DNA of 64,000 nucleotides, taken from the sequence record LC597490.1, one strand, 5' to 3'. The translations under genes were made by a program, and so were the position numbers. This document shows positions 25,613 through 48,757 of the stretch, piece after piece. How positions within the stretch are numbered: the stretch's first letter is position 1; each line of letters starts with the position of its first letter. Below the pieces are notes generated by a model. That model was not told the DNA's origin. It was given only the letters and a program-made list of their open reading frames with translations, and ran no database searches.

Positions 25613-28600
25613 TTATTGCGTTTTATCTGCACCGTAATTATCAAGGTCTTGGTAGCTTGTTGTGAACTTACGGTCATCTGCATCTGTGTCAGCCATGAAG
25701 TTCATGAAGCCACCGACTGCTGCGAAGAATCCATCACCAGAACCATCGAAGCCTAGACCTTGCAAGAAGTTGTCCATTGAACCTTGTTTCGTATCACCGA
25801 CAACCATACCTTTGTGACCGTTAATACCAGCTGTAAACTCTTTACCTTGGTGCATTAATGGCATCATCAGTACAGCTTGGTTCGTAGTCTTACTTCGTCT
25901 CCACTTCTCGAATAAACTTTCAACTAACCATCCAGCAGTTAAACTGAATATCCATCCAAGTGGTGTTCCTTTCGAAGCAAATGTTCCAACGCCTTTAATG
26001 AACTTAGAACTTGATTTCATATCTTTCATTGCACCAGGTAATTTAGAAGCAGTTAGAAGTGAACGGGCCGCTAATTTCTTAGTGCCTTTCATAATCTTAC
26101 CATCCTTACCAGGTACTCCTCCAGATTTTAACCATTCCTGCGCCTTTTTGGAAACATTATCTGCGGCGGTTTTTACACGTTCCCAAGCCTGAGCCTCATT
26201 CTTACCTTCTTTACCTTTTGCTTTATAGTAAGAATCCAGTGCCTTCTTCAGTTCATTTGTTTCAGGAGTATCAGGAAGTGTATCCACAAGGTTCTTCATA
26301 CTCTTCTCGACTATCCATCCACCAGCTGCTTTACCTTTGGTCATGAGCGTTCGACCTGTTGCACTATTAGCGAACTTACGAGTTGCCGCATTACCAGCAC
26401 GTAATCCCATAACAGTTGCTCCAGCTAACATTCCGACAGATGCCCACCAGTTAGAATGAGCCAACATTGCTTTGTCATCAATAACAACAACAGCATCAGG
26501 AGTAACACTTGAAATGAATCCAGTCTCATGAGAGAAGTGATGAACAACAGCTTCAACTCCGATGTTACCGTTCATATCAGAAACAGAGTCTGACATATAA
26601 ATCATGTCATGTGGTTTCAGTGTTGGCGTTCCAATGATTGTGATACGTCCTTTATACATATCCTTCATGTAATCACGTACTGTACTTGCAGAGTAGTAAA
26701 GAGCTTGCTTCTCTGTAGTAAACATATCCCAACCTGGAATTGTACGAGAGATTAATGGAAGGTCAACAACTGCTGTACGTTGCATTGAGAAGTCAATGTC
26801 GTAGTCTGCATAAACTGGAGGTGTTGGTTTCCCGCCGTAGTTACCAACAACAATTGTATACATACCATCAGAAGATGCTTTGATTTGGTTAGATATAATA
26901 TCCATTCCATCGTCAATATAATGAAGCTGACAATAAGGACGTCTATATTCTGTATCAAGCGTACGATCCCATGACTTCGTTTTCTCATTATAAGCATACG
27001 TACTGTCGTAACGATATGCCATGTTCCAATAAGGTTTTCCGAAGAACAAGGTAGAACGAGTTTCGAATGGATGTACTGCCGCAATATAATCTGGGAAACA
27101 GTAAGAAATGTTTGTAGCTACATCCCAAATTGTTTGATTATATAGAGGCATTAAGATATTGTCCTCGTCACCGCCTTGGAATTTAAGAATGAACCCATCC
27201 CACTTCATAGGAATACGAGTACCATCTTCATAAATCCATTGGCTAAATGTTTGCAGTCCATTTGCAGAGTAAATGTTTTGAGCAGCTTCTCCATAGTTTT
27301 CATTGAAGAACTTGAAGTTTGCATCTGGTGTTCTATCACCTGGACGACCAAAGTGAGCTACCCCTAATGGATTGTCACGGAAGAATCTGTTTTCGCTGGC
27401 TACGTTGATTACGTCTTTTGCCCATGAACCTTTAGATGTTAAGAGCTTACAGATAATGTCTCGTGGTTCTTGAGCATTAAATAGTTTCGCTGTTTTATCA
27501 TCAGGGTCACCAGAGATAACACTTGTTAATTCCAGCCCGTCACCTTGAGCAACGAGTGTAATAACATCGTTTGTATCCATCTCTGTAATCTTACCGTTGA
27601 ATACAGTTGGTAATCTTCGTACAGATGAACCATAACCCATTCGTAAATGGATACGAGCACCAACTTCTAACATCATACTGTTTAATAAGTCTGAGCGAGA
27701 ATCTAAGATTGCATCACTTGGATTATCCAGTACTAAATTATCCCAGAAGCTATATGCAAAGCTGTCGTACATTTCACTTGTTGGTCGTGCCGTTAAGTTA
27801 CTGTATACGTTTGTCATGGAGATAACAGCTGTGTCAGCTACTTGTTTTCTACTTCTATGAACATCAATAGATTGGATTGCGTTGAATCCGTAGAAGTTAT
27901 CCCATAAACGATATGAACCCATCCAACGTCCTTCATCAATAATGAAGAATTGGAACGTAGGGAATGCTCGACATAAGCGACCTCTCATATCATAAGACAG
28001 CATATTGTGAGCCATTTGAGAGAATGCTTCTTCAGGAGATTGCTTGAATAATAGACGGTTGTATTCTTCATCTTTGATGTCTTCTACTTTTTGTTGGTCT
28101 TCATAGTTCTTCGTTTCTTGAGACTTACCATCTCCGAACCAATTGTCCCATAAAGAACCATCTCCACCGAATGTTTTACTCCATCCTAAAGCTAGAAGGT
28201 CAGTTGCCCATTTACCAATCAACATGTTTGTATTACCGCCAGTTGGAATCTTAACTTGGTCTAGGTAACCTTTTAATTTTCCATCCTTATGCATCTTCAT
28301 GTATGACTCATAAATTTTCTTAACTTCACTAGTAGACTTTTTCTTAATCTCACTGAGTAATGCCTTCGCCTTTTCCTTACCAAGAACATCTTCCAGAATC
28401 TTAGAATCCTCTAAGTCCTTGATTAATGCATCCTTATCACTTGTTGCAACGTTAACAGTATGAGAAGACTTACCATCAACTAACTTCATAATGTCAGGGT
28501 CTACAACTTGTCGTGGAGAACGGTAACGGTTCTTATCTTCATTGTATAAAGACTTCCACACACTCATGATAGAAGGGAATGCACCTTCCTTAATACTATC

Positions 28601-31600
28601 TTTCTTCAGCTCACCAATATAGAAAGCGGATAACATGTAATCCCAAGCACGATATTCAAATTCTTTCTCTTTTGAATCTCTAGCTTTTACATAGAATTTA
28701 TAAATGTCTTCTACGATTACTTTCAATTGGTACTTCCAATCCCATAGGAATCGTTGTGCATCATCTACACTAGTTGCGAAGTTTGGAATATCCACTTTAC
28801 CAAGACCACCGAATGTACCGTTTACATAAGGTTTACTCATAGAGTCGAAACCATTCCACTTACTTTGATGATGGAAGAATGCTTTTAGATAGTTAGCAAT
28901 ACGAGCACGAGTTGTTGGCATAAACTCTTTGTAATACATACCGTTTGTTTTATCTTGTCCCATTAATGCAATCAGGTTGTCGGTAGGTTTCTTACCTTCA
29001 CGATATTGCGTATACAATTTAAGATGGTCTTCTGGGTCAGCATACGTAAGTTTTGTATGTCCACCAGTAGCCTTATTCTTATCGTTATATACATTGTTGT
29101 TTTTAACCCAGCGTGCATCAATTAATGCATACAATTCCTTGTAGAAATCAACTGGTTTTGGAACAACATTCTGTCTCCATTTTGTAAAGTCCGCTTCTGA
29201 TTCACCATAACCCCATGTCTTCCACTTATCTAAAGGAGGAGGCGTGTCGATATTCTTCTTATCTTTCAACCAAGTAGCAACTTCAGCATTTGGTTTCCCA
29301 GTACCTTTTGCACCACCAGTAGAGTCAGTCGCATTCTCAGCAGCCTTTTCAGAGTTCGCGCCCTTATTATCTTCAGCCCAGTTAAAGACATATGGAACAT
29401 AAGGAGTCTTTTTCTCAAGCGCTTCGATAACATGCATGTTCTCTTTATCTACATCCATTGGGTCAGTAGAAGTAATACTAGAAGACATGTGTACACCAGA
29501 GGAGTCACTGAACTTCATCTCTTTACGTTGTTCTAACTGCTTCTTAATTTCTCCACGGAACGTCCATTTTGTAGAAGCATAGAAGTCAGGGTCAACGTAG
29601 ATACCGCCTGGTTTGTTTTTGTACTCCTTAATACCAGCTCCAGTTTTCTCAATGACATCATTAAGCTCTTTGTAAGTTGGTAATTCTAAGTCAGGATATA
29701 CTTCCATTTGGTCCATCTTGTACTCAATGATTGCATCTTGTAATTTGTAATCTACAGTAGATGAATGCAATTGGTCACGGTCTGTACCATTGACTGCGCT
29801 CATACCTTTTAGTTCTTCTTGACGACGTTGTGTTTTATTGAAAGCAACTAATACCATCTCACCTTGGAATCGACCAGGGAATCCAGGGACAGTATTTACG
29901 TTAAGTGTTTCAATCATTACACTTCTAACACCGAATAGTTTCAATAATTGATTCTCTATTCCTAAGAATCCAGAAGAGATACCTACACGATAATGACGAG
30001 CGAACTCATCAATCTTATCTACTAAGTTACGTAGCTTTAATACGCCATCTTCTGTTAACTCAAGGTCTAGTTTTACGGCAACATCTTGAGAACCAAGGAA
30101 CTGCATCGTAGGTGATTCACCAGTACGAGTTTGAGCAGAACTGAATATGTTTTCGTACATAACTTGCATAGAAGTAACTAACATGTCCTTCTCAGGAATT
30201 GTGTAATCAATCATGGATAGTTTAGATTCTGTTACATATACAATATCACTTAACTTGTTGTAACGATCAATCTCAGTCATTGCCATTTGTTCAGCACGGC
30301 GACCTCTTTCAACGATTCCTTTTAATGCACCTAAAGAAGTTTCTGTTACATAGAAATAACCAACGGCTTCTTTTTCAGACTTAGGTTTTACCCATAAGTT
30401 TCTATGCTTCTTCAGTTCTTCACCATTTGGAATTGACCATAAAAAGATTTTGAATGTATCCTTCTTACGGAAGTAGCCTGGAAGTTCTGAACCTTCTTCT
30501 GGGTCTACTGGTAATTTACCACGCATAATGTCATGGACTTCACTATCATGAGGAGCGAAGAATTCCGTATCATCAAATACAGCTCTTGCACTTCTATTGT
30601 TATACATATCTTGGAACACTGGATGTCCTTCCACTAAGTCATCAGGGTCTTTGATATCGCCATTCTTTTTATGACGTTGGTACTTATCATATTGCTCAAG
30701 AAGGAGTGAAGCTTTCTTACCATCGGCAATAACTTTACCTAGCTCACTTTTCTTTGCATCAATTTCCATTCTCATAACATTGATTGGCTTCATTTCACGA
30801 AGAGCAATGATTGCTTCTGCTCGTTGTTCCAATTCAGCTTCATCAGCATGAGAGAAGGAAATCTTATTTGTTAATTGTCCAGAGATAGGCTCTAGGAAAG
30901 TATGAGCTTCGTTAGCTGGTTTTGTTAAGCTACGTTGGTAGTACCATCTCATTAATGGATAGTTGATTGCGTCATGCAAACTAACTTCTTGAGGCATGTA
31001 GGCTTCAGAGTTAAACTTCGCTAATGTTAAGTTAGCCATGATAGAGTGAGGGAATCCTGGGACTGTCTCTACTGATAAGTTCATTAATGCTACATCATGA
31101 ATATCTAAAGTTGTATTAATGTATACATTATCAATAGGAAGGAAAGGCATCTTTTGGAACTGAGCAATCAGCTGGCGTAAACCATCCATTGTATATTCCA
31201 TACCTTCTGGAGTCTTCCACGGTGTACCATTAATCGCTTCTAAGTCGTGGAAATATAATTGTAGATTAATGGATGTACTTGCATATCCAGTTTTCGTTAA
31301 GATACTTCCTTTTGTACGAAGTGTTTTAATACGTTCAGTGTGAGAAGTTCTATTTACTTGGATACCAAGTGGAGGAACTGTAAGCAATACATCACCAATA
31401 CGAACACGATGTTGGTTTTGGAGGTCGCCCATTTTCTCGATTCTATCATCTAATGGTTCTAAGAAATCAATTGAGTTATCAAACACATCATCATATTTAA
31501 TTTTAACTTCCGATAAGTCTGATTTCTCTTCATTGTTCTTATTGCTTTCTTTGAAGTAGTCGTCTAGTTTTTCACCGACTGTTCCACTATCAGGCATGTC

Positions 31601-32575
31601 TTTTAGTAGTCCAAGGTCTTTGTACCATTTCATAACATCAAAGCGAATATAACCTTCATCATTTACGAACTTCTCATATGGCATACCAAGTGGAGCAGGT
31701 GCATATAAAGCAGAAGGTTTCGCAAGTAAGCTTTTATTCATGTTGATTGCGCTAGGTATTTTGTCACCCTTTAATACATCAGATTTATTTGCATGTGTTT
31801 TGTAAACAACAGCAACATAACGACCATACACATCTTTACGTGGTTCATGGTTTTCGATTCTATCTACATCGACAACAACGGCTCCAGAGCCACTCAACAT
31901 GTTATTCATATAGTCTCTTGCTTCTTCACCGATCTTGAAGGCTTGTTCTTTTGTTACTTTATAACGAGACATGTACCCAGCATTACGAGTTGTACCCGAT
32001 GCTTCACCATGGTCTTCTGTCTCAGGTGCTTGTACACCTACATAACGAATGTTTATACGTTCGCCTTTTTTAACATGCAGTCCAATCCATTTACCAGTAT
32101 CATATACAACCCCAGAGATTGTATCACCATCTTTTACTTTTACATCTTCTAATACAATGATACCTTCTGATACTGGTGTTTCTTCTGGAGGAGCTGCGAA
32201 TGCACGAGCCATTAATCTTGGAGCAAAAGCAGGTTCAGGTTTTTTATCTTCTCCTATTTGCCCTCTTTCATGGAATGGAGAATTGGATTCAACAGGAAGC
32301 TTTCTTACTACATGAGCATGTAACTCTATATTAGAAATTTTTCCTCCAAGCTTTCTTGTGAAACCATGACTTCCTTCAGTTTTATTGAAGGTAACGGAGA
32401 TAGGATATGCTTTATTTTTTTCAGCTACTGTTGTTAAGTATTCTGACAATCTGTTTCCAATAGAAACTTCATTATATCTAAAACGAACTCGTTCTCCATC
32501 TACATCCAGAGTAAGAAGCCAGAATGACTCTGGCTTCTCTTTCTGAACAGATAGGAGTCTCATTTCATACAACAT
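25613..32575 (-). CDS. Giant baseplate hub protein (2320 aa) with an N-terminal thermonuclease domain, tube-like domains, a degenerate lysozyme-like domain, a hub domain and hydrophobic C-terminal helices
   Basis: DGDT (D149)...RYVGVQAPE...DVYGRYVAVVY (SNase fold); AIQSIDVHRSRKQVADTAVISMTN...GARIHLRMGYG...VFNGKITEM...LVAQGDG (gp27/gpD-like hub); position upstream of the spike and wedge genes. Confidence 0.8.
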   Translation of the reverse strand: MLYEMRLLSVQKEKPESFWLLTLDVDGERVRFRYNEVSIGNRLSEYLTTVAEKNKAYPISVTFNKTEGSHGFTRKLGGKISNIELHAHVVRKLPVESNSPFHERGQIGEDKKPEPAFAPRLMARAFAAPPEETPVSEGIIVLEDVKVKDGDTISGVVYDTGKWIGLHVKKGERINIRYVGVQAPETEDHGEASGTTRNAGYMSRYKVTKEQAFKIGEEARDYMNNMLSGSGAVVVDVDRIENHEPRKDVYGRYVAVVYKTHANKSDVLKGDKIPSAINMNKSLLAKPSALYAPAPLGMPYEKFVNDEGYIRFDVMKWYKDLGLLKDMPDSGTVGEKLDDYFKESNKNNEEKSDLSEVKIKYDDVFDNSIDFLEPLDDRIEKMGDLQNQHRVRIGDVLLTVPPLGIQVNRTSHTERIKTLRTKGSILTKTGYASTSINLQLYFHDLEAINGTPWKTPEGMEYTMDGLRQLIAQFQKMPFLPIDNVYINTTLDIHDVALMNLSVETVPGFPHSIMANLTLAKFNSEAYMPQEVSLHDAINYPLMRWYYQRSLTKPANEAHTFLEPISGQLTNKISFSHADEAELEQRAEAIIALREMKPINVMRMEIDAKKSELGKVIADGKKASLLLEQYDKYQRHKKNGDIKDPDDLVEGHPVFQDMYNNRSARAVFDDTEFFAPHDSEVHDIMRGKLPVDPEEGSELPGYFRKKDTFKIFLWSIPNGEELKKHRNLWVKPKSEKEAVGYFYVTETSLGALKGIVERGRRAEQMAMTEIDRYNKLSDIVYVTESKLSMIDYTIPEKDMLVTSMQVMYENIFSSAQTRTGESPTMQFLGSQDVAVKLDLELTEDGVLKLRNLVDKIDEFARHYRVGISSGFLGIENQLLKLFGVRSVMIETLNVNTVPGFPGRFQGEMVLVAFNKTQRRQEELKGMSAVNGTDRDQLHSSTVDYKLQDAIIEYKMDQMEVYPDLELPTYKELNDVIEKTGAGIKEYKNKPGGIYVDPDFYASTKWTFRGEIKKQLEQRKEMKFSDSSGVHMSSSITSTDPMDVDKENMHVIEALEKKTPYVPYVFNWAEDNKGANSEKAAENATDSTGGAKGTGKPNAEVATWLKDKKNIDTPPPLDKWKTWGYGESEADFTKWRQNVVPKPVDFYKELYALIDARWVKNNNVYNDKNKATGGHTKLTYADPEDHLKLYTQYREGKKPTDNLIALMGQDKTNGMYYKEFMPTTRARIANYLKAFFHHQSKWNGFDSMSKPYVNGTFGGLGKVDIPNFATSVDDAQRFLWDWKYQLKVIVEDIYKFYVKARDSKEKEFEYRAWDYMLSAFYIGELKKDSIKEGAFPSIMSVWKSLYNEDKNRYRSPRQVVDPDIMKLVDGKSSHTVNVATSDKDALIKDLEDSKILEDVLGKEKAKALLSEIKKKSTSEVKKIYESYMKMHKDGKLKGYLDQVKIPTGGNTNMLIGKWATDLLALGWSKTFGGDGSLWDNWFGDGKSQETKNYEDQQKVEDIKDEEYNRLLFKQSPEEAFSQMAHNMLSYDMRGRLCRAFPTFQFFIIDEGRWMGSYRLWDNFYGFNAIQSIDVHRSRKQVADTAVISMTNVYSNLTARPTSEMYDSFAYSFWDNLVLDNPSDAILDSRSDLLNSMMLEVGARIHLRMGYGSSVRRLPTVFNGKITEMDTNDVITLVAQGDGLELTSVISGDPDDKTAKLFNAQEPRDIICKLLTSKGSWAKDVINVASENRFFRDNPLGVAHFGRPGDRTPDANFKFFNENYGEAAQNIYSANGLQTFSQWIYEDGTRIPMKWDGFILKFQGGDEDNILMPLYNQTIWDVATNISYCFPDYIAAVHPFETRSTLFFGKPYWNMAYRYDSTYAYNEKTKSWDRTLDTEYRRPYCQLHYIDDGMDIISNQIKASSDGMYTIVVGNYGGKPTPPVYADYDIDFSMQRTAVVDLPLISRTIPGWDMFTTEKQALYYSASTVRDYMKDMYKGRITIIGTPTLKPHDMIYMSDSVSDMNGNIGVEAVVHHFSHETGFISSVTPDAVVVIDDKAMLAHSNWWASVGMLAGATVMGLRAGNAATRKFANSATGRTLMTKGKAAGGWIVEKSMKNLVDTLPDTPETNELKKALDSYYKAKGKEGKNEAQAWERVKTAADNVSKKAQEWLKSGGVPGKDGKIMKGTKKLAARSLLTASKLPGAMKDMKSSSKFIKGVGTFASKGTPLGWIFSLTAGWLVESLFEKWRRSKTTNQAVLMMPLMHQGKEFTAGINGHKGMVVGDTKQGSMDNFLQGLGFDGSGDGFFAAVGGFMNFMADTDADDRKFTTSYQDLDNYGADKTQ

Positions 32576-32591
32576 ATGAAAACCTCCTTTA

Positions 32592-38500: not shown

Positions 38501-40139
38501 TCCAACGTCCTCCACCAGATTCAGTTGTAGAGAACATCTTATCGTAAGTACGTCTTGCACGGTCTAATCCATATGCAGTTCTATTACCCGCATTAGGGTT
38601 TGCTAATTGAGGAACTTCTTCAGAAGGTTTAAATACTTGGTGGAATACACTTTGAAGGTCAGTCTCACTGTCTCGTGAAATGAAGTGGAATAAATCTGTC
38701 TCTAAGTTACGAAGTAAGATACCACTTTGTTTATTATCAGAGTTCTTTAATTTACCGCTGAATGTTTTTACAACCTCATACTCTGATTCTTTAGAGATTG
38801 GGTTTACGTTTCCTTTATAAGCAGGAACCAATTGTTTCTTTTCTGGGTCCCATCGGAATACACCATCATTTGCTCCGCTTTCATATCCTGGCAAACCTGT
38901 CATTGAGAATACTTTATCTCCAGCCTTAATGGAATTACTATTCCAAGTACCATTCATACGATTACCTGCATCAGCATTTACGATGCCTTCTACATTCAAC
39001 TTATCTAAGAATACTTTATTGGCAACATCTACAGTTAAGTCTGTATCCTGTAAAGCCATGTGAGTTGCTTGTGCGATTTCACCAGTCATGCCGTAAAAGT
39101 TAGCTAGTGTTTGGTTTCGTAAACCATGCTTAGAACTTAGGTCAGCAAATAAAGAATTGGCAATAGATAATGTATCGAATGAGTCTGCTTTCTGAATATC
39201 AGAAGCTAAACGAGTTAAAGCCATTCTAGTCTTTCTATCATGCTTAGGTATGCTAGGAACTAGCTGGTCTTTAATATAATCACGCATGAAAGGAATATCA
39301 TATGTGTTAATATTTTGCCCACCTAGTTTTAATTCTTTTCCATTACGTAATGTTTTTAAGAATTCTCTAGCTACTACATGAGGTTCTGTACCATGCTTCA
39401 CAACATTCTCAAATCCACGTTTTGCTGCTTTAATTTGGTCATGTGTAAATAAGGTACCTTTCATAGCTTTTTGATCTTTATTCTGTTTTAAGATAGTAGT
39501 CATATCACCATCTTTACGGAAGTATCCATTACCAAATGCATCATCTGCTCCGTATAAGATTAAGTCATTCACGGTACGTCTTTCATCATCCGTTAAGTTG
39601 ATACCTGTAATATGAATCCCCTTTAATTTCTCAAAGATATCCATTACATGCTTTTGTTCTTTCTCACCTGGTTTTACTAATAAAGAAAGAGCCTTATCTG
39701 TTTTGCTGAATTGAAGTTTACCTGCGGCATCTCTTTCTACTTTTGTTTGACGGAAACCAAACTCTAAAGGTGAGTACCATTCTCCGCCATGAGTACCAAT
39801 ATTCTCAATATCGAAGAACGTGAAGATATCTCCAGCCTTCATATTTTGAATCGTTTGGATGGATTTTTGAGCATGGGATTTCGTGCTTGTACTTGGGATA
39901 TGGATAGACTTAAACATATTCATTTGAGAATCAGCAGCGTTTGTTAATATCTTACCGTTGTAAGTAGCCGCTTTGAATAACTCATCAGCACCTGTTGTTC
40001 TTGGCTTCTTTTCTCGTTGAGACATTTGAGCCACAATGTACGATGCTTCAGGGTTTGTATTTTGTTTAATATAAGTACCATGAAGGGGGTCGTATTTAAA
40101 CTGACCCCCATTTTTAATTCCCCCTTTATTTTCTTCCAT
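32592..40139 (-). CDS. Putative virion-associated single-chain two-barrel RNA polymerase fused to an N-terminal DEDDh 3'-5' exonuclease (2515 aa), encoded in the tape-measure position
   Basis: Beta-prime-like NRYPT (R1958) and ADHDGD (D1996/D1998/D2000; nt 34140-34157). Beta-like TFEG (E1255), GRK-x7-R (K1395/R1403) and SKGMHG (M1435). Exonuclease motifs FDIE (D110/E112), GQNINTYD (D281) and HMALQD (H360/D365). Confidence 0.85.
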   Translation of the reverse strand: MEENKGGIKNGGQFKYDPLHGTYIKQNTNPEASYIVAQMSQREKKPRTTGADELFKAATYNGKILTNAADSQMNMFKSIHIPSTSTKSHAQKSIQTIQNMKAGDIFTFFDIENIGTHGGEWYSPLEFGFRQTKVERDAAGKLQFSKTDKALSLLVKPGEKEQKHVMDIFEKLKGIHITGINLTDDERRTVNDLILYGADDAFGNGYFRKDGDMTTILKQNKDQKAMKGTLFTHDQIKAAKRGFENVVKHGTEPHVVAREFLKTLRNGKELKLGGQNINTYDIPFMRDYIKDQLVPSIPKHDRKTRMALTRLASDIQKADSFDTLSIANSLFADLSSKHGLRNQTLANFYGMTGEIAQATHMALQDTDLTVDVANKVFLDKLNVEGIVNADAGNRMNGTWNSNSIKAGDKVFSMTGLPGYESGANDGVFRWDPEKKQLVPAYKGNVNPISKESEYEVVKTFSGKLKNSDNKQSGILLRNLETDLFHFISRDSETDLQSVFHQVFKPSEEVPQLANPNAGNRTAYGLDRARRTYDKMFSTTESGGGRWMLERMYAALDALNEGREKIKRGEIRKSDIADYVQNHPNVQRTVGGTPTGLPNSQYRDLLVMEKRLTQEKKVWQTAMARLDANLPGSNGFTPFSQNVALSNIAKQLDERYGSGETRVRMPNGKGFLELQLPGETTHRIDLSTDATAARNIRSYITKGLDIKENISKNGGVDIGIVKKRLKDVVNHVRRPGASGLTSSEKSQLLRQVSELQHGESPYMVIESMARMMRAEYSHNSSYANHNLDIKDVSSIRKPLVEAYQNPAILEDIIGRGIDSGRASHKSQGKTLDLSDAKFQKALQTHDEALNGLMQISGGNTARGVQTMKAEDVVKQLINSYSGDGMATQLIYDGHKKTYMLAVMQETVMKEVMGLQPNQIIEHAKVASVPIPLLDENMNVTMPGSTKTGYLKAMRMNGKDILGTPLEQLVDGAVRRSSSTKELIRKGNEQEAHSRLRRQAREATEKFSHNNPYTNAKELTKHDSKRSQIAQRAARSKIDVSGWAEEWYSWYDQRYGFEKELGVKNKYQQIKDKSAQSYTSFFENLGMREQRAFHSTIQEFASREKNMYLNAGNVSGEQVLNGIYGTRETSQAYQAFGHYNILAREQMNKTRNYIPLEEREIRSRLQAKGYTSAEIERMIQTSATTTASEALSAPLRMPDGSVIQQKELTGLNVQAVELTDMDIKDRMDEFRKSSPDAYADLVRKYGQGFEKNLTTFEGMSIIDKSLQSVFDTKREKNFTLQRGFELHSDIANFFKQAENNDLAKDGFRAVRTDNGGWRLEGDVMKNATELETILGGRVNNPGKADHGKLTVGQVSIGQNTQYQTEKAWGDGFHVVGYDPETRKLQTQMIEKTENGRKFLTDANHRITTNFFDRDIFEALGVGDAKAIVTVSDISKGMHGTEIEGQVRLAVDEANRLITNSEMDFKNEAVKKYVSDIKDMTQRIFQIPDGDIAMKLEPVQGSNLTVGKLVLNSEHGRIAGPVYGAQQEYDFVKQSSQMLEELAAKAGVINYTAPINRQEKNVNLTLRVADLHKWQDQMGVSETGKEGLVRWTYKEQEAILNRTDQILGRKDHTIGKFVRQQISSRSAIQNSSKEMTLAEETSGILRAINDHQNTTLQKNGVVQEGDIVIRTGGNIMTDLDPDGTHTAVMKDGHLEISQHAFRDPQFNVATDPEMTKGKLGNYAMTLADPRSLQLQIEGLGEGVEETVGSLMKKNGGTFLLELPSNSEHQFKDKYVRLMSPGTMQIGTGPEALEMANEVDKRSLGIWRNIKAYQAAPTIENKEAVEKSVDAYKSYLNYMVTGSHGGTLLDKYSAKMDMSGRFHIEGVNMHEKGLAEGDALIGPKQMRRMIAGAEGDIVQSLAPKRHEAVLTEYNERMTQAGKAKGDEKVRLESLAKQFKSERMGEEALEIAKTNGLYGFTNRYPTINKQTNGVLRYLVDDTIEANTMYVGAGTAKVFKADHDGDNGNAVFNHYKASKTHTVDDIRAVHKEMQQVQQGSIPLYEQAGVEMAADELKHYNAEKLTVGEQLQREIQRSQDYGELAGWGPKTTRLNEMESLLARTGKADIGVLDNLRQRMQTLTNPTYEALAKKGLISQDEAYQAMNILEEFSSKISQDSISSKKISVGALTEEIVKSWGKQLTNDESQYAAKVMEHHGAEAVMGEVEKRMQTHYQAIEMLKEGVIRPDSVGVEKIRKANDILGIFKTSNPNESMNHYGLDTHLDQLQDLYSLSGNTFTENPHLKGMQSGGTKDTDIVSNIVAGGKYESVPTPHLDNIAANNPQFKKIYDEGVENFENLISERFSFRDRALKDSLADTITETPHLSKNTLTEMVGADKGIVRATEAVSEKMSGLAHKMGPGMIGGAIGFGAMWAASALMRSGPTPEAFQEQTDMAPPPPPPVQVSSGPTARVTPNENINISIRAKDAKGMSQQDISKLVHEELSRQTSAQLNMNMNVNDNTQKLDNEWMQTQFANVMGKGFTY

Positions 40140-40151
40140 CCCAATTCCTCC

Positions 40152-43100
40152 TTAGCTAAATACTTTTGTCCAGTTCGTGTTTAGTTCCTGGATAATTTCT
40201 GCGCTTCTATCTTTCATCATGTCGAAACCGACATTAATCATATTCTCATCTTTAGATGGTGAACGTTGAACGGTTACCTGTACATCATCAAGACCTGCTC
40301 CTCGAAGGATTTTTTCGATACGAGATGAGTTGATAAGGTCACCCATTAAACGTGGTTGCATGTCGATTGCATCTACTCCAGAAGCATCTGCTCTCGTTTC
40401 ATCACTACCCCAGAATCCAAACTCTGTAAGTTCCATACCTTCATTGCGAACAACCTTTAACTTAATGTCATTCAATGCGGTATCTGCACGCCAACCTTCC
40501 CAGTTTTCACTAGGTAAGTAATGTGTCTTGAAATAAGATTCATTACTCTCTACTTCATCCATCTTCATTCCCCACTTAGCTTGGAAGAAGCGACGTTCAT
40601 TTTCAGGAACAAGTCGAAGGATTTCCTCCCTTTCATCAGGAGCAGCCTTCATGAATTCTGCAAAGTACTCTCTATCCTTTTTCGGTAGAGAACGGAAGAT
40701 TTTTGTCATGTCACCATTTGGGTCAGCCCCGAATAATGTTGACTCATATTCCGCTTTATATTGAAGAGCTAGTAATGTATGTGGCCCGATGTCCACACTA
40801 CTTCTATCCTCACCAATTGTTTTCAGATTCTCACGGATACGTTTTAACTGGAACTCCGTAAGCTCATCATCACCATAACCCATTTTTTTCTGCATTGCCA
40901 ATTGTTTTTTGTAAAGTTCTAGAGTTTTACGAGACTGTTTATTTTTCTTACCACGCTTGCTGTTTTCGTCTAGAAGTTCTTTTAAATCTACACCTTCTGT
41001 ACGTTTCGCTTCTTCCGCAGCCTTCTCATATAAACCTTTAAACTTCATGTATTTCAAACGGTCAAAGTACTCGTTAACTTCCCTTTCCTTCTTACGTCTT
41101 TCTGGTAACCAAACTTCACTATTGCCAGGAGTATGCTCACTTAGTACTCGTAGAGCCGCAGCCCCACCACCTACTAATGCACCAATCCATTTACCGTAGT
41201 ACTTACCTTTACCTCGTCCAGCTAACCAACCAATACCATAACCTTGAGCAGATGCGATTAATGGATTACGAGAAGCCATTGTTTCAATCATAGGTTGTAA
41301 CCATCCAGAGATAGGTTCTTCCCATGGTCTCCATGCTTTACCATATACTTCAGTACGTTTGTATTGCTCTAATGGAGAACGAACTTGTAAGAACTTATCA
41401 GCGATAGGTCCGATGATTGGTAAGCTTGGTAATAAGTCATGGCTTAGAAACTCCCACGTTTTACCGACAGTAATTTGATCGTTACTGAATAAAGCTTGTG
41501 TAGCAGTCGCACTACCATCATCTTTCACACTTACGTTGTTCTCTCCGCCGAATCCCATGAAACCACCGAAGGAGCGATTCGCTAACATGTAGTTGACGTT
41601 CTGACCTTTTTGAGTCATGTAGAATGGCATACCTTCTTCACTGTTACCAGCGTATACAACAGCACGCATTGTATTCATCATGTCATCACGGACACGGAAT
41701 AGTGGGTCGGCATCTAATCCTACTCGAATCTTCGCACCTTCATAAACGAACTGACGCAATAAAGCCTGAGCTTCTTCATCATCTTTCTTGATAGACACAC
41801 CAGCTAGTTTAATAGGGTTGTTCGGGAATTCTTCTGTTAAGAATGTATTCTGGTCAAGAATCTTCGTAACAGTTACATCTTGCATATCAATGTCAGCATT
41901 TGTGAATCGTTTATCAAAGAATTGGTATTTCTTTTTACGCTCACGGACTTGCGTCATTACTTCTTGGTACTCATCTTTCATATCATCTGTTAAACGACCA
42001 TCTTGGTTCATTTGAGAAACAACACGTTTCCACATACGATATTGGTCAGAGTAAGGAGCAACGTCAGCTAAGATACGGAATCTATCGAATGCACCGTATT
42101 TGCTTCCATCTTCTTGAGAGAACTCATCTGGATGTAGTTTGTATAATCTTTCATACGCTTCACCAGGAAGTCTCATTTCCCCTTTACTTACTTTTACATA
42201 AGGGTCACCATATTTAAATGGTAAGAAGTATTCAGCACCAGGCATCCAGTCTGGCATTTCATTTCTAATTGGATTGTAGTAATTTTTATTCGGGTCACGA
42301 GGAATGTAACGACGGAAAATCTCGGAGAATCCGCCACCAACCATATCAGCTCCACCTAGTTCCATATCCCAGAAACTACGTGCCATACTATCCATACGAG
42401 AACTTGGCTCAAGTGTTAAACCACGTCCACCCTCTTGGAATCCAGATAATGCTTTTGTACCGAAACCGTAGATACCAAGAACCTCAGATGCAGAGTAGAA
42501 CATATCACGAGCTATACCAGATGGATTGCCAATCTCACCGATATCAGCTAAGTCTGCTAATGCTTCAGGGTCACGTAAGCTTTCTAATTGAGTTAATGGT
42601 CTCATCTTAGATTGGTTAACAGCTGCTTGACCTCTCATGGTGATACGCTGGTTTATTGCAGTTAAGGCTGCACTAGAGTAATCTCCAGCTCCAACCATTC
42701 GTTCAGTACCTTCGATAGCAACGCCACCTTCAGCACTTGCTCCACCACCAAGACCAATCGCACCACCGCCACCAGAACCATAACCTTCTTCATATCCACC
42801 ATCACCAGAAGGCATGTCTTCATATACTTGAAGTCCACCAGCTGGCATTAATTGAATACTAGCACCTTCACTATAAGCATCGAATCGTCTACTAGATGCA
42901 GCGATTACTTCATCTTGATATCGTTCATGCTGTTCTTGTAAGTCTGCTCTGACAGTACGAGGAGAAATGATTCGTCCAATTGTATTATCAGCAAGAGGAC
43001 CAACAATAGGGAAGTCGGAAAGGATTGTTCCACCTTTGATTGGATACGGTCTGTCATCTTCGTGTTTCTTTTCTAGATAACTATGACCATTTAACATGTA

Positions 43101-46100
43101 TGTTAATGGAGCTAAAGGATTCGATAATGTAGGAATCCAAGTGTTTGCCCAATAATCATTTGCACTACCATAAAGAGTATCAGTGTATTCATAATCACTC
43201 TTTGCTTTACGATACCAGTTTGGTTCCCATCTCTCGATCTTTCCACCAGCCCAAGGTGTATTAGAACCTAGACCCCAGTAACGACCTTTACGTACTGCAT
43301 CTTCACCTGACTCATAATACTTGTTTACTTCTTCTTCTGAACGGAAATCAGAGAATGCACCAAGTGTTAAGAAGTCGAATGCTTTTAAGAATGGCAATTC
43401 ACCTAGTTGTCCTGCACCTGCAAATGGAGCAGTTAACTCTTTACCAATACGGTTAATACCAAGTGTTTCTTTCACGCCAGCTAAATCACCATGCATATTT
43501 ACATACGTATCAGCTAGGCTATCACTTACTGTATCTCCAGTCATATCATCTAGGTATTGTAATTCTTTATAACCTATATAAGGAAGTAAAATACGTTTCC
43601 CTAATTGGTTAACGAGAATACTTTGCATACTACCTTTGTCTTTTTGGGCAAGACCTAATCCTACTTTAGCTAACGCATTATCCATACGTTCAATACCATA
43701 GTAGAAGAATGTTGTAGCAGTTGTTACATCACCAAGGTTATTACGCCCAGCGAATGGTTGCTTTAATACTTCTTTTGTACTATTCAGGAATGCAGATACG
43801 GAACTAGAACCATCTTCAACTAATTGTTCGTAGTTTTCTTTTGCCCAGCCAATACCTTTTGCATCACGCATGATACCATAACCTGTTGTAGGTCCGAAGT
43901 AGTTCGGTGGTCTCATACCTGGTCCAGTACTTGTTAGTGGATTGAAGTCTTTAATACTCTCATGAATAGCTTGACCAAATACACTGTCTTCACCTTTCAT
44001 TAATCCAGCAAATTCTTCTAATGCATCGTCACCATAGGTATTACGGTTACGGTATACATCCTTCCACCATGTACGCATTTTAGAAAGGACTTCCATATTA
44101 CGTACTTCAGATAATGCATTCTTATCTAAGTCCCCTTCTAGGATTGCATTACGAACCAGACGACTCGTACCTTCTGTTGTCATATTAACTTGGTGAATCG
44201 AGTGTTGTTGGATTAAACGTTTTGCATCATCTAATATACCAACTAATTCTGTTTCACCTGTTTCTAATGCAGAAGCAAACTCAGGAAGGATTGCACCATT
44301 ATCACTAGAGATACGTTGGTTCTTTAAGAAACCTTGAGGAGAACGACTGAACTTTGTCCACATCTCATCTAGTTGTTCTGCTAGTGCTGTATTACCTTTT
44401 GAGATTTTACCATCGAACTCTGGAGAACCAATGGCTTGTCGTAAACGTCCTACTGCTCCCATGATTTCTTCTGTTGTATTTAATTTCGTTAAATCAATAT
44501 CAACATTCCCATACGCTTTCTTTACATGTGGATTTAAGAAATCAACTGTTGTACTAGAGAAGTTGGTAGTCTTTTCATTAAATGAACTGTAGATATTCTT
44601 ATAGATACCTTCTACTTCATCTAAATCTTTGTACTGACCTTTCATCATTTGACGAACTTGGTTAATCTCCCAGTCAGGGTCTTTAAACTTCGTGAACATA
44701 CTCTTAATACGTGAGAAGCTAGACTCTGTTTCTTGTAATCCAAATCCAAAGAAGTTTTTAACTGGCCCGATATCATCATAGTTTCGTACATGTAAATTCG
44801 CCATACTAGCTGGCATACGGCTGAATACACCGAATCGTCTATCAGCTAAGTAAACACCTTCATCTACTTTACTCATATCATTCATACGGTATACATTACC
44901 ACCAACGAAGATATGGTCGTCTGCTAATGTACCAGCAGCTGCATCTCTATTATGTGCCGCAGGATGTTGTACTGTTCTTGCTCCTTGTAAGAATGGGTCA
45001 ATATCCCCACGCTTTAATACATAACTTTTAGGAGCTTCACGAATTGTTTTCACACTTGAATAGTGAGCAAGGTCTAATGGGTTAAATCGTAGATATGGGA
45101 GTTGCACATTATCTTTTACAATATCAAGGAAATTGAAACCGCCCTCAATACTGTTACGCATATCAACAACATTACCTGACTTATCTACGAATAAGCCTGG
45201 GTCTACATGTAGGTCTCCTAGCTCTTTATCGGACTTCATATGAATACGGAAGTTGTTGGCTAGGTTCTTAGGAGACATCTTACTAGCTTTTTCTAATGGA
45301 ACTAAGAAGTCAGCACTATCTTGGTCAATCAAACCTCTGTTTAATGTTTCTTTTAATGTCAGTGGCTTTAAACCTCGGCGTTGTGCAGCCTCCATCCACT
45401 TACCATTCTTATCAATGGAGTGGTCGTCTTTAAATGCTTTCACACGGATATCACGATACTCTTTATAATTTTTCTTCGCAATTTCCTTTACATTCTTATC
45501 CTTCTTAACAGTGACCATCGTTTGGTAAACGGTCTCCGCTGTCTTCTTACGTTCTAATTCATCAACGAAGTCTAATGCATTACCAATGTTGTTCTTCTTT
45601 GCATTCTCTCTTGAATGCATCTTTAATAGTTCGTCTACCTTTTTAAGTGACGGTGCTTCGAAGAATAAGTCATCACGTTTTTGACGAAGGACATTCTCAA
45701 GTCCACCTTCCTTCATTCTTTCAGGAAGAACAGAACTTAATCGTTTCATTGTCTCTTCAAATTGAGTAGCACGTACAAAGTCCTTACGTTCCTTTTGAAG
45801 ACCTTTCATCATAGACAGATATTCATTTTGAATCTTTGTTGGTCTTCCACCAAGAGGAGTTCGTGCCATACGCATTCTCTCTTCTTGCAAGTCTTTAAAT
45901 GTACGAGTGAAACGATTATCGAATCTATCTTTGTTTCTCATATGGAACAGAGGATTCTTTTGATCTAATGCATGGTCTAATGATTTTAAGTACGAACCAA
46001 CTTCACTCATTGCATTTCCAACAGGAGTATTGCGGGCTGACATTTTAGCAGCTTGAATAGCGGCTCCTCTCATAGCCATACTAGATTCATGTGTAACTAC

Positions 46101-46229
46101 CTTTATTCCTTTACCGATTGCTCGTCTGTATTTATAACCTAGTGCAGCACCGCCTACTATACCTGCAAGCTCTAAAGGACTGGAACCTTCTTGCTCTGGT
46201 AAGGGCTGGCGTCCAGTTTGTTCTGCCAT
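40152..46229 (-). CDS. Tape-measure-like / ejection protein (2025 aa) with hydrophobic segments and a degenerate thermonuclease-fold domain
   Basis: Directly follows the chaperone pair; helical composition; Gly/Ala hydrophobic stretches (LAGIVGGAALGY; GYGIGWLAG...WIGALVGGGAAAL); VTKILDQNTF...IKLAGVS...MRAVVY...NVNYMLAN resembles SNase without its catalytic residues. Confidence 0.65.
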   Translation of the reverse strand: MAEQTGRQPLPEQEGSSPLELAGIVGGAALGYKYRRAIGKGIKVVTHESSMAMRGAAIQAAKMSARNTPVGNAMSEVGSYLKSLDHALDQKNPLFHMRNKDRFDNRFTRTFKDLQEERMRMARTPLGGRPTKIQNEYLSMMKGLQKERKDFVRATQFEETMKRLSSVLPERMKEGGLENVLRQKRDDLFFEAPSLKKVDELLKMHSRENAKKNNIGNALDFVDELERKKTAETVYQTMVTVKKDKNVKEIAKKNYKEYRDIRVKAFKDDHSIDKNGKWMEAAQRRGLKPLTLKETLNRGLIDQDSADFLVPLEKASKMSPKNLANNFRIHMKSDKELGDLHVDPGLFVDKSGNVVDMRNSIEGGFNFLDIVKDNVQLPYLRFNPLDLAHYSSVKTIREAPKSYVLKRGDIDPFLQGARTVQHPAAHNRDAAAGTLADDHIFVGGNVYRMNDMSKVDEGVYLADRRFGVFSRMPASMANLHVRNYDDIGPVKNFFGFGLQETESSFSRIKSMFTKFKDPDWEINQVRQMMKGQYKDLDEVEGIYKNIYSSFNEKTTNFSSTTVDFLNPHVKKAYGNVDIDLTKLNTTEEIMGAVGRLRQAIGSPEFDGKISKGNTALAEQLDEMWTKFSRSPQGFLKNQRISSDNGAILPEFASALETGETELVGILDDAKRLIQQHSIHQVNMTTEGTSRLVRNAILEGDLDKNALSEVRNMEVLSKMRTWWKDVYRNRNTYGDDALEEFAGLMKGEDSVFGQAIHESIKDFNPLTSTGPGMRPPNYFGPTTGYGIMRDAKGIGWAKENYEQLVEDGSSSVSAFLNSTKEVLKQPFAGRNNLGDVTTATTFFYYGIERMDNALAKVGLGLAQKDKGSMQSILVNQLGKRILLPYIGYKELQYLDDMTGDTVSDSLADTYVNMHGDLAGVKETLGINRIGKELTAPFAGAGQLGELPFLKAFDFLTLGAFSDFRSEEEVNKYYESGEDAVRKGRYWGLGSNTPWAGGKIERWEPNWYRKAKSDYEYTDTLYGSANDYWANTWIPTLSNPLAPLTYMLNGHSYLEKKHEDDRPYPIKGGTILSDFPIVGPLADNTIGRIISPRTVRADLQEQHERYQDEVIAASSRRFDAYSEGASIQLMPAGGLQVYEDMPSGDGGYEEGYGSGGGGAIGLGGGASAEGGVAIEGTERMVGAGDYSSAALTAINQRITMRGQAAVNQSKMRPLTQLESLRDPEALADLADIGEIGNPSGIARDMFYSASEVLGIYGFGTKALSGFQEGGRGLTLEPSSRMDSMARSFWDMELGGADMVGGGFSEIFRRYIPRDPNKNYYNPIRNEMPDWMPGAEYFLPFKYGDPYVKVSKGEMRLPGEAYERLYKLHPDEFSQEDGSKYGAFDRFRILADVAPYSDQYRMWKRVVSQMNQDGRLTDDMKDEYQEVMTQVRERKKKYQFFDKRFTNADIDMQDVTVTKILDQNTFLTEEFPNNPIKLAGVSIKKDDEEAQALLRQFVYEGAKIRVGLDADPLFRVRDDMMNTMRAVVYAGNSEEGMPFYMTQKGQNVNYMLANRSFGGFMGFGGENNVSVKDDGSATATQALFSNDQITVGKTWEFLSHDLLPSLPIIGPIADKFLQVRSPLEQYKRTEVYGKAWRPWEEPISGWLQPMIETMASRNPLIASAQGYGIGWLAGRGKGKYYGKWIGALVGGGAAALRVLSEHTPGNSEVWLPERRKKEREVNEYFDRLKYMKFKGLYEKAAEEAKRTEGVDLKELLDENSKRGKKNKQSRKTLELYKKQLAMQKKMGYGDDELTEFQLKRIRENLKTIGEDRSSVDIGPHTLLALQYKAEYESTLFGADPNGDMTKIFRSLPKKDREYFAEFMKAAPDEREEILRLVPENERRFFQAKWGMKMDEVESNESYFKTHYLPSENWEGWRADTALNDIKLKVVRNEGMELTEFGFWGSDETRADASGVDAIDMQPRLMGDLINSSRIEKILRGAGLDDVQVTVQRSPSKDENMINVGFDMMKDRSAEIIQELNTNWTKVFS

Positions 46230-47337: not shown

Positions 47338-48078
47338 CTATAATGATGCGTTGAAGTCTCTAGCAATAAATGTATAGACTTCTTCAACAGGGCTTCCGTC
47401 CCTCCCGACGATTTGTGAAACACCTGTTAATTGCACACCTGTTAATGTTTGTGCTGTTGATGCTACCTTATTACCATTTGTTTGAGTCATTGGACCATAT
47501 TGAATGACGATGTTGAAACCCATATCGCCTAGTTCTTTTTGTCCACCTTCATTACCACTTACATGGTTTGTGAAGTAACTACTATTTTGTCTGATAGCAC
47601 TAGCTGTTGTGATGGAATTAATGCCTTGTTCTTCCCAAAAGGTTTTTTCGAACTTGTCAGCTACCGCATAGAAGTTTTCTCCTGATGCCGCTTCAACTGC
47701 TTGTTCTAATGTAAGGTTGCTTTTGAAGTTATCATAACTGAAGACTGCTCCATTATCTGGAGAAGTAAGAGGGGCTTGTAATCTTTCAAGTGCTGATTGC
47801 AGATAGAATGATTCTTTAAAGTTGATGGAGAACTGACCTTGAATTTGACGAGACCCTCGTGCTACCTTATCCCATGTATAAGAAGCGTATCCAAAGATCG
47901 GCGCTACGTTTTCCTGCATTGAAAATTGTAACCCTGTAATCTCATCCAACCAAATATCATTAAAGTAAATTCTTACATCTGCACCAGTAAAATATTGTTC
48001 ATTGAATCTCTTATACTCAACAGTCTGTCCTGGAGAGTTATATGAATATCCAAAAACACGAGGTGTAGTGTTTCCCAT
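47338..48078 (-). CDS. Tail-tube paralogue 3 (probable tube initiator); start revised to ATG 48078
   Basis: FTGADVRIYF...ITGLQFS...PIFGY...ARGSRQIQGQF...TFIARD; RBS AGGAGGT precedes 48078 rather than 48102. Confidence 0.75.
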   Translation of the reverse strand: MGNTTPRVFGYSYNSPGQTVEYKRFNEQYFTGADVRIYFNDIWLDEITGLQFSMQENVAPIFGYASYTWDKVARGSRQIQGQFSINFKESFYLQSALERLQAPLTSPDNGAVFSYDNFKSNLTLEQAVEAASGENFYAVADKFEKTFWEEQGINSITTASAIRQNSSYFTNHVSGNEGGQKELGDMGFNIVIQYGPMTQTNGNKVASTAQTLTGVQLTGVSQIVGRDGSPVEEVYTFIARDFNASL

Positions 48079-48106
48079 TTTATACCTCCTTTTCCTTATC
48101 AACGTT

Positions 48107-48136
48107 ATCGTAACGATTCGTTTCGTTAAAAGTCAA
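48107..48136 (-). promoter_or_regulatory. Possible sigmaA-type promoter (TTGACT-N18-TACGAT) overlapped by short inverted repeats
   Basis: Seen in the non-coding gap; ATCGT-A-ACGAT at 48107-48117 and CGTTA-TCG-TAACG at 48103-48115. Confidence 0.45.
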
Positions 48137-48143
48137 GAGTTTC

Positions 48144-48716: not shown

Positions 48717-48732
48717 ACTGTTTCCTCCCTAT

Positions 48733-48757
48733 AAAAAAAGAGGGCGCTATGCCCTCT
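48733..48757 (-). terminator. Intrinsic terminator after the major tube gene
   Basis: AGAGGGC-ATAGC-GCCCTCT then TTTTTT. Confidence 0.85.

Follow-up and report, generated by a model that had tools for sequence, protein, structure and literature searches.

The 64,000-nucleotide stretch of sequence record LC597490.1 analyzed here, referred to below as the window, belongs to Bacillus phage vB_BceM_WH1 (229,829 bp; host Bacillus cereus), which it matches at 100% over the region compared, and all of its large open reading frames (ORFs) are carried on the minus strand. Three consecutive giant genes in its tail region, gp096, gp095, and gp094, on balance appear to constitute a conserved virion module of jumbo myophages resembling phage 0305phi8-36, in which the gp095 protein would be built into the tail, ejected, and used to start phage transcription. 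Because gp095 carries a conserved RNA polymerase (RNAP) active site together with an exonuclease signature, it is probable that WH1 delivers its own transcription enzyme through its contractile tail. The best explanation for gp095 is a predicted DEDDh exonuclease followed by a long middle region, a two-barrel RNAP that family alignments and a structural model indicate to be catalytically intact, a hydrophobic segment, and a C-terminal module. gp094 is best explained as a baseplate hub whose N-terminal enzyme is exchangeable and in WH1 is a calcium-type staphylococcal nuclease (SNase), and gp096 as a conserved companion with a degenerate nuclease-like domain.

A preliminary description of this DNA had placed three giant ORFs of 2025, 2515, and 2320 amino acids (aa), about 20.6 kb in all, after the tail chaperone genes, and had proposed that they form an injected transcription and nuclease machine. 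The ORFs were exactly as described, spanning 20,617 bases together with no internal stops, and the product name of all three in the WH1 record is 'virion structural protein'.

The RNA polymerase and exonuclease regions of gp095

As a single sequence, gp095 had no match in Pfam, PHROGs, NCBIfam, or PDB, and the polymerase signal emerged only once relatives were collected. A word-indexed search with gp095 identified 15 relatives of 2366-2546 aa, and the WH1 protein was aligned with 12 of them. Eight residues in the polymerase region were invariant in this 13-sequence alignment: N1957, R1958, P1960, T1961, D1996, D1998, G1999, and D2000. Judged from the alignment, these residues form the N-R-x-P-T/DxDGD signature by which the catalytic double-psi barrel (DPBB-A) of RNA polymerase largest subunits is recognized. 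The Pfam family PF00623 matched 8 of the 13 proteins (best E 1.9e-5), and the best PDB profile match of the family was the beta-prime-like gp55 of phiKZ, which aligned on the NRxPT...DxDGD block (E 0.39).

A phmmer search of 1.84 billion representative proteins with the polymerase segment found 37 proteins at E ≤ 0.001, 30 of which were 2384-2541 aa long and matched at the same relative position. When the relatives of at least 1800 aa from the word-indexed and phmmer searches were pooled, the DxDGD motif was kept in all 38, and a strict NRxP[ST] motif was found no more than 70 residues upstream in 30. These proteins are only about 25% identical, yet the metal-binding and upstream motifs of RNAP are strictly conserved across them, which points to RNAP-type catalysis by gp095.

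The fold was examined with an AlphaFold2 model of residues 1300-2400, built from the 13-sequence alignment (pLDDT 68 overall and mostly 70-90 over model residues 140-1045; pTM 0.57). Foldseek returned 140 matches to this model in PDB at E ≤ 1e-3, and the 50 that were listed were beta-prime, RpoC1, Pol I A190, and the beta-prime of phage AR9, with a probability of 1.00 and approximately 280 aligned columns. Among the BFVD structures, the matches included the middle giant of Acinetobacter phage ME3 (E 1.3e-8) and many RNAP subunits of phages and giant viruses. In two-barrel RNAPs the expected order is DPBB-B, connector, DPBB-A, and bridge helix (PMC10770324). The gp095 model followed this order, with a strand-rich block (residues ~1664-1775) and then two long helices upstream of DPBB-A and further long helices after it, and conserved basic residues (K1591, R1599, R1667, and R1773) fell within that strand-rich block or close to it. 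Secondary structure and conservation served to predict where the second barrel lies, and no separate beta-type subunit gene to accompany gp095 was found. The catalytic barrel and its motifs are present in gp095, the catalytic activity is predicted from the alignments and the model, and the assignment of an RNAP domain is graded as strong, which bears out the RNAP that had been noticed in the 2515-aa protein.

The BFVD search also returned a 'minor tail protein' of Siphoviridae sp. ctnpt50 (A0A8S5SD80_1), whose match to the polymerase model extended over 779 columns (E 2e-7) and which may be another tail-protein-borne RNAP.

The N-terminal region of gp095 contains the Exo I (DxE), Exo II (D), and Exo III (Hx4D) motifs, and hence all five residues of a DEDDh exonuclease; the His-x4-Asp form of the third motif is the mark of the DEDDh subclass. 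Residues D110, E112, N276, D281, H360, and D365 were invariant in two gp095 alignments (11-13 relatives, 18-63% identity), one of which was restricted to the first 450 residues (11 sequences, 18-31% identity to WH1). Both DxE and Hx4D were kept in 36 of the 38 pooled relatives. Of the 41 PDB chains matched by the profile of this region, almost every one was a 3'-5' exonuclease domain from a family-B DNA polymerase or from exonuclease I; Pfam RNase_T was matched by one relative at 0.037. These results suggest, with moderate confidence, that gp095 probably begins with a DEDDh 3'-5' exonuclease. The DEDDh domain claimed in the preliminary description was therefore retained for its invariant residues, whereas its profile support was weak.

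The most hydrophobic stretch of gp095 is a Gly/Ala-rich segment at residues 2390-2411, in which W2405, S2408, and A2409 are invariant in the family alignment. Comparable segments were found in all three giants, with Kyte-Doolittle (KD) scores of 1.17 in gp095 (2391-2411), 0.90 in gp094 (2045-2065), and 0.80 in gp096 (1677-1697). The Gly/Ala-rich hydrophobic helices that had been described for each protein thus exist, but as segments of modest hydrophobicity. A C-terminal module follows the segment in gp095, and the last ~60 residues of the protein are the sole part that can be aligned with ORF146 of phage 0305phi8-36. The same pattern of similarity limited to the C-terminus is shared by ORF146 and its BtI1 counterpart (Hardies et al. 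2007, PMC2147016). This module may dock gp095 to the conserved hub.

The flanking giants and conservation of the module

The product of gp094 matched ORF147 of 0305phi8-36, annotated as 'baseplate hub protein', in tblastn searches (E 8e-48), as well as the hub of ME3 (E 7e-16). ORF147 has been related to gp27 (PMC2147016); a direct match of gp094 to gp27, VgrG, or gpD was not found in Pfam, NCBIfam, or the PDB profile search. The Gly/Ala-rich segment of gp094 lies inside the most conserved region of the protein.

Residues 143-264 of gp094 matched the Pfam SNase family PF00565 (E 1.4e-5; 25.9 bits against a cut-off of 21), and the domain matched the calcium-activated nuclease EcnA of NCBIfam (NF047969, E 5.3e-7). 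D151, T152, and R252 were invariant in 17 relatives, and D149, G150, R177, and E185 nearly so; we take these seven to be the calcium-binding and catalytic positions of SNase. The gp094 family profile aligned the C-terminal half of the fold to PDB structures of thermonuclease (E 0.11). The SNase assignment is graded as strong, in agreement with what had been described for the 2320-aa protein. The N-terminal slot that holds this domain was variable across 75 clusters of relatives, with SNase in the WH1 clade and lysozyme-like, SLT, M23, or LysM domains elsewhere. The hub of 0305phi8-36 has SLT, NlpC/P60, and M23 domains at this position; the wall-degrading functions that are fused to the hub in 0305phi8-36 are encoded by a separate gene, gp093, in WH1.

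The best conserved of the three giants was gp096, with 90 clusters of relatives, mostly of 1960-2160 aa. An AlphaFold2 model of its conserved body (residues 830-2025; pLDDT 74, pTM 0.69) had a single Foldseek match in PDB, the staphylococcal nuclease 2qdb (E 0.11, probability 1.00, TM 0.64 on target). When the gp094 and gp096 families were compared with hhalign, there was likewise a single match, between residues 216-284 of the gp094 SNase and residues 1484-1550 of gp096 (E 0.038), in which the invariant Arg of gp094 was out of register in gp096. No SNase match of gp096 was found in Pfam, NCBIfam, or the PDB sequence profile. A degenerate SNase-like domain is thus plausible at weak to moderate confidence; the 'dead SNase' of the preliminary description held up in the fold and family comparisons and not in the domain databases. 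A Gly-rich linker is present at residues 1152-1172.

Several other properties of gp096 were observed. Its N-terminal 800 aa (window 43800-46229) are Lys/Glu-rich, poorly conserved, and helical. A gp096 profile match to the N-terminal part of binary-toxin ADP-ribosyltransferase components (E ~1e-4) was judged to be compositional, because the matching stretch is Lys/Glu-rich and poorly conserved and the catalytic part was not covered. Four gp096 relatives (P0046, P0086, P0087, and P0105) contained intein or LAGLIDADG domains (PF14528, PF14890); domains of this kind are not usual in a protein that lacks a known enzymatic role.

Paralogy among the three giants was not found in an all-against-all BLASTP comparison, and single-sequence searches of all three against PDB sequences gave nothing useful. 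The features of the module are collected in the table below.

Features of the giant gene module and adjacent genes in the window (coordinates in window positions)
Feature	Coordinates	Strand	Basis
gp095, giant 2, 2515 aa; predicted exonuclease, RNA polymerase, and C-terminal module	32592..40139	-	ORF; ORF146 position
Signature of a probable DEDDh-type 3'-5' exonuclease, gp095 residues ~95-375	39015..39857	-	invariant residues and PDB profile
Predicted two-barrel RNA polymerase core, gp095 residues ~1440-2345	33105..35822	-	AlphaFold2 model, Foldseek, BFVD
Catalytic barrel DPBB-A, gp095 residues 1950-2006; N-R-Y-P-T 1957-1961, D-H-D-G-D 1996-2000	34122..34292	-	invariant columns, PF00623
Gly/Ala-rich hydrophobic segment, gp095 residues 2390-2411	32907..32972	-	uncharged, KD ~1.2, 50% Gly+Ala
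Conserved C-terminal module, gp095 residues 2412-2515	32595..32906	-	many invariant columns
gp094, giant 3, 2320 aa; predicted baseplate hub with nuclease head	25613..32575	-	ORF; ORF147 homologue
Staphylococcal nuclease domain, gp094 residues ~143-320	31616..32149	-	PF00565, NF047969, phrog_452 endonuclease
Most conserved hub region, gp094 residues 1517-2270	25766..28027	-	phrog_20474 (E 6e-217), phrog_8809; dense invariant columns
gp096, giant 1, 2025 aa; conserved virion protein	40152..46229	-	ORF; C-terminal half homologous to ORF145
Conserved, mostly helical body, gp096 residues 830-2025	40155..43742	-	34-59% identity to 40 relatives
Possible SNase-like OB domain lacking the catalytic pattern, gp096 residues ~1447-1560 (approximate bounds)	41550..41891	-	strand-rich block, model residues 618-730
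gp098, first tail-chaperone-type gene, 160 aa	46830..47312	-	phrog_29362 and phrog_29368; annotated tail chaperonin
gp097, second tail-chaperone-type gene, 176 aa	46245..46775	-	phrog_29368, in common with gp098; annotated tail chaperonin
gp093, separate tail lysin (transglycosylase with L,D-endopeptidase-like C-terminus)	24324..25598	-	directly after hub gene

Related jumbo phages and phage-like replicons, more than 15 in all, kept the gene order of the trio: a protein of ~2050 aa comes first, a DxDGD-bearing one of ~2450 aa second, and one of ~2420 aa with an N-terminal SNase signature third. The trio was syntenic in 11 of 12 IMG/VR loci (contigs up to 264 kb, one of the trio loci starting within the module and another ending within the middle gene), in phage KLEB27-3, and in two bacterial replicons. 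Phage Edson is 90% identical to WH1 at the DNA level. Profile comparison placed the middle giants of the two bacterial replicons, one from Cytobacillus (E 1e-137) and one a Paenibacillus 'plasmid' (E 6e-43), in the gp095 family over nearly their full length, and the Cytobacillus protein keeps the motifs, DxDGD included, at 21% identity. In Acinetobacter phage ME3 the trio occurs in a reduced form (1263, 1603, and 2329 aa), and the motif there is a DxDxD variant. A scan of genome contigs with two peptide patterns gave no confirmed relative, an outcome that reflects the limited reach of the patterns, given that the trio does occur in two bacterial replicons.

The twelfth IMG/VR locus (IMGVR_UViG_3300045988_179398, here L023, positions 7058-18149 of a 124-kb contig) was unrelated in context. 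In this locus a 2210-aa protein with NRxPT and DxDGD is encoded directly upstream of a canonical tape measure of 1371 aa, with an integrase gene nearby, and the 2210-aa protein had a weak match to phrog_2987, 'RNA polymerase beta subunit' (2.4e-5).

Two members of the module were interrupted in the annotation of related phages. The gp096 homologue of KLEB27-3 (L004, 4623-11776) is annotated as two coding sequences (CDS) with one 211-aa ORF between them that had no Pfam match; this ORF may be an insertion of the intron type, or the gene may be genuinely split. The middle-giant region of Moorella phage MTATph1 (L010, 12513-19869) is annotated in several pieces, among them a transposase gene, and looks like one insertion.

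In WH1 the order of transcription is two sheath paralogs, three tube-type paralogs, two chaperone-type genes, gp096, gp095, and gp094, followed by the lysin gene gp093 and then by small baseplate genes and a baseplate J protein gene. The two-gene chaperone described for 0305phi8-36 is the counterpart of gp098 and gp097 (PMC2147016). The gp093 product matched the EmtA-type transglycosylase (5.4e-5) and MepK (2.3e-4) families of NCBIfam and transglycosylase and endolysin families of PHROGs. The sheath paralogs (548 and 483 aa, window 49402-53091) are separated by a 218-aa virion protein, and the tube-type paralogs (254, 190, and 191 aa, window 47338-49343) all matched phrog_9206, which is labelled 'major head protein'; this duplicated sheath and tube set is the same as that described for 0305phi8-36. 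Further downstream are giant virion proteins with binding-type domains, namely Laminin_G_3 (9783-12404), LysM and DUF4815 (12498-15743), and fn3 (15755-17953), and family scans of a 1495-aa ORF at window 5299-9786 gave no clear family.

Proposed role of the module and alternative explanations

A sequence of events can be proposed for infection by WH1. The gp095 protein would form part of the tail, its C-terminal module lying at the hub, and upon contraction of the sheath it would leave the particle ahead of the DNA. Its hydrophobic segment would stay at the membrane, and its polymerase would transcribe the first genes of the entering genome without the host RNA polymerase. Later genes would be read by the host polymerase redirected by two phage sigma factors. 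From the features described above we infer that gp095 lies in the tail lumen, is ejected and anchored in the membrane, and is active as a polymerase at this stage; what the exonuclease and gp096 would do is deduced likewise, and DNA entry may in addition be driven by transcription.

The transcription genes of WH1 are relevant to this proposal. The WH1 record lists two sigma factors (gp018 and gp030), and an RNA polymerase is not annotated in it. A motif scan of the record from 126 to 226 kb and of the window found only gp095; in the first 50 kb (1-50 kb) no RNAP is annotated, and that part, like 50-62 kb and 226-230 kb, was otherwise covered by tblastn with orf99 of 0305phi8-36. The orf99 product is a stand-alone YonO/RdRP-like RNAP encoded next to the right terminal repeat (L011, 39027-42683). 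With orf99 as the query, tblastn gave no match in WH1, Edson, KLEB27-3, ME3, or MTATph1, and did match SPbeta-type and other Bacillus phages. An RNAP of the YonO/orf99 type was also considered for gp095 itself and was ruled out at the sequence level, as hhalign gave no alignment between the gp095 family and orf99 in the polymerase region. The polymerase is thus either stand-alone, as in 0305phi8-36, or inside the middle giant, as in the WH1 type, with which Edson and KLEB27-3 agree, although these are two data points and not a rule.

Two other genes of WH1 were noted. An 822-aa protein of the early region (record 144024-146492), for which the product name in the record reads 'xxxxx', has an N-terminal nucleic-acid-binding domain of the Rho_N/SAP type, and no polymerase motif was found in it. 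DNA polymerase III alpha (record 194353-198551) is annotated as three CDS in WH1, and the gene of 0305phi8-36 is interrupted by a mobile intron.

The injected machine proposed in the preliminary description draws support from the virion annotation, the detection of ORF145 and ORF146 in virions of 0305phi8-36, the RNAP active site, the exonuclease signature, the nuclease-bearing hub, the precedent of Thermus phage P23-45 (PMC10770324), and the lack of an orf99-type RNAP in WH1; its enzymatic parts are the firmer ones, and its injection is proposed conditionally. The filling of the tail lumen by all three proteins, a membrane conduit, a membrane-tethered polymerase, and DNA pulled in by transcription are conjectural elements of it. 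Several observations weigh against it. The virion content of the WH1 giants is known solely from the product names in the record. None of the three giants matched a tape-measure family in Pfam or PHROGs, whereas the protein at 14034-18146 of L023, used as a control for this search, matched 13 tape-measure PHROGs. No hydrophobic segment of the three reached the classical transmembrane score of 1.6. The second barrel of gp095 (DPBB-B), which in two-barrel RNAPs contributes two basic residues to the active site, matched no known beta-type barrel by sequence or among the fold matches listed. The PDB profile matches of the gp095 exonuclease, which aligned on the Exo II block, had a best E of just 0.045, and the exonuclease and gp096 SNase assignments both depend on E-values of 0.04-0.1. 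A quick repeat scan of the small-gene region, which was not a proper motif search, showed no convincing promoter-like motif. Because the middle giant of 0305phi8-36 is of the same size and has no polymerase motif, the polymerase is not required for the structural role. Finally, the gp095 polymerase and the C-terminal body of gp096 are predicted to be compact globular folds and not extended tapes, so that the two proteins would not fit the lumen of the tube unless they are stored unfolded or in some unusual way, or are located elsewhere.

This last point bears on a first alternative, in which the capsid holds gp095, and perhaps gp096, until ejection, as for the virion RNAPs of N4 and crAss-like phages or the core proteins of T7, and the length ruler is another protein or just a part of one of these two. 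Besides the compact prediction for both large domains and the absence of a tape-measure match, this explanation could appeal to T7, whose ejected core proteins are also encoded among tail genes. Virion RNAPs fused to large proteins of unknown function have been described in crAss-like and N4-like phages (PMC10770324). However, in WH1 these genes are located immediately after the tail chaperones and before the hub, and gp095 shares only its C-terminal module with ORF146, which was assigned as a tape measure from tail length (PMC2147016). P23-45 furthermore shows that a folded RNAP can belong to a tape measure. Storage in the capsid is accordingly regarded as unlikely.

A second alternative is that the enzymes act outside the cytoplasm or not in transcription, with the hub nuclease clearing biofilm or wall-bound nucleic acid and gp095 processing or holding the DNA end. 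The gp094 nuclease may equally act outside the cell, because the slot that it occupies holds wall lysins elsewhere, cell-surface enzymes of the lysozyme-like, SLT, M23, and LysM kinds being found there in other lineages. Staphylococcal-type nucleases are calcium-dependent secreted enzymes, and the best NCBIfam match of the gp094 domain is a calcium-activated nuclease. The middle giant of 0305phi8-36, which has no polymerase, would fit a role of gp095 outside transcription. Such a role is difficult to reconcile with the strict conservation of the RNAP metal-binding and upstream motifs in 38 relatives at ~25% identity, and a further, orf99-like polymerase gene is lacking in WH1. This alternative therefore seems improbable as a whole.

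That the trio is simply an ordinary tape measure, a hub, and an accessory protein whose enzyme resemblances are chance motifs or dead relics is very hard to believe and is already contradicted for gp095 and gp094: although a single DxDGD is expected ~0.15 times in 6860 residues of this composition (an estimate) and the gp096 SNase-like domain looks degenerate, the motifs are invariant across the family, the RNAP fold was matched independently (140 matches), and the Pfam SNase match is above its curated cut-off.

With delivery of gp095 through the tail as the preferred explanation, a broader proposal can be put forward tentatively, as a possibility that we do not hold to be the more probable outcome. 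By means of a widespread family of tail proteins of 2,400-2,500 aa, jumbo myophages of the Bacillales, and ME3 with its shorter form, would inject a single-chain fusion of a two-barrel RNAP with a DEDDh exonuclease, which would make their earliest transcription independent of the host. The tail-borne RNAP and the YonO-like RNAP of 0305phi8-36 would then be alternative solutions within one lineage, and RNAP giants beside or fused to tape measures would have at least three separate origins (P23-45, the WH1 family, and the L023 type).

Comparison with known systems

One of the described systems close to WH1 is phage 0305phi8-36 (Thomas et al. 2007; Hardies et al. 2007, PMC2147016), where two chaperone genes precede ORF145, ORF146, and ORF147 (1930, 2537, and 1903 aa) in the arrangement seen in WH1. 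The C-terminal half of gp096 has its homologue in ORF145, and gp094 in ORF147. According to the 0305phi8-36 annotation, ORF145 and ORF146, the latter labelled 'hypothetical tape measure', were found in virions by mass spectrometry, and the hub ORF147 has no such note. ORF146 was assigned as the tape measure from the length of the tail (Hardies et al. 2007, PMC2147016). Unlike gp095, ORF146 has neither the DxDxD nor the exonuclease motifs in the register of the gp095 family, and ORF147 has wall-lysin domains in place of the nuclease. The stand-alone orf99 of 0305phi8-36 is absent from WH1 by tblastn. A survey of jumbo phages mentions orf99 alone for the 0305phi8-36 lineage (PMC7824862).

The multisubunit RNAPs resemble gp095 in their beta-prime subunits, including those of phiKZ and AR9, which supplied the best fold matches, the gp55 block alignment, and the PF00623 matches of relatives. 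They differ in that gp095 is a single chain located inside a giant of the tail module, and sequence similarity is limited to the catalytic barrel. The virion RNAPs of crAss-like phages (phi14:2 gp66) and N4 are giant virion proteins that deliver an RNAP with the DNA for early transcription, as is proposed for gp095. In contrast to WH1, these phages are podoviruses whose RNAP is thought to be stored in the capsid, and the N4 enzyme is T7-like rather than two-barrel. Proteins of crAss-like phages were just weak BFVD matches to the gp095 model (E 0.003-0.03).

The literature search turned up no paper on WH1 or KLEB27-3, and the only work found on a tape measure combined with a two-barrel RNAP was that on P23-45, subscription literature being outside the search. 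The names WH1, KLEB27-3, ME3, and 0305phi8-36, and the accessions of WH1 gp095, ME3_36, ORF146, and orf99, were not found in supplementary files of that work (PMC10770324). Orthology of gp095 with gp96 of P23-45 was not detected: no relative of the size of gp96 was among the 37 phmmer proteins, no gp96 structure was among the 50 listed PDB fold matches, and the only P23-45 protein in the BFVD results had an E of 0.044.

The closest precedent is the gp96 protein of Thermus phage P23-45, a virion RNAP fused to the tape measure, which transcribes the pre-early genes (Chaban et al. 2024, PMC10770324). In the proposal made for P23-45, the tape measure forms a pore and the RNAP is located there (PMC10770324). 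Like gp96, gp095 is a giant in the tape-measure position with a predicted two-barrel RNAP, a DxDGD-type motif, and hydrophobic segments, and its proposed role is also the transcription of the first genes at DNA entry. There are clear differences between the two. P23-45 is a siphovirus whose RNAP is N-terminal in a protein of 5002 aa, whereas the WH1 tail is contractile and its RNAP lies in the C-terminal half of 2515 aa. Unlike gp96, gp095 has an N-terminal exonuclease signature and no metallopeptidase was found in it, and WH1, unlike P23-45, shows no second, non-virion RNAP in the regions scanned.

If gp095 is a working, tail-delivered RNAP, the tape-measure-fused virion RNAP would be a recurring arrangement that is also used by contractile-tailed jumbo phages of Bacillus. 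This would bear on how infection starts in phages that have no recognizable early polymerase gene, on the naming of the many giants called 'virion structural protein' or 'tape measure' in jumbo-phage genomes, and on the passage of large folded enzymes through the tube of a tail. The fusion of an exonuclease to a tail RNAP and the nuclease-tipped hub would be new combinations. We regard the gp095 family as an undescribed relative in kind of the tape-measure-fused RNAP that has been reported for one group of Thermus phages.

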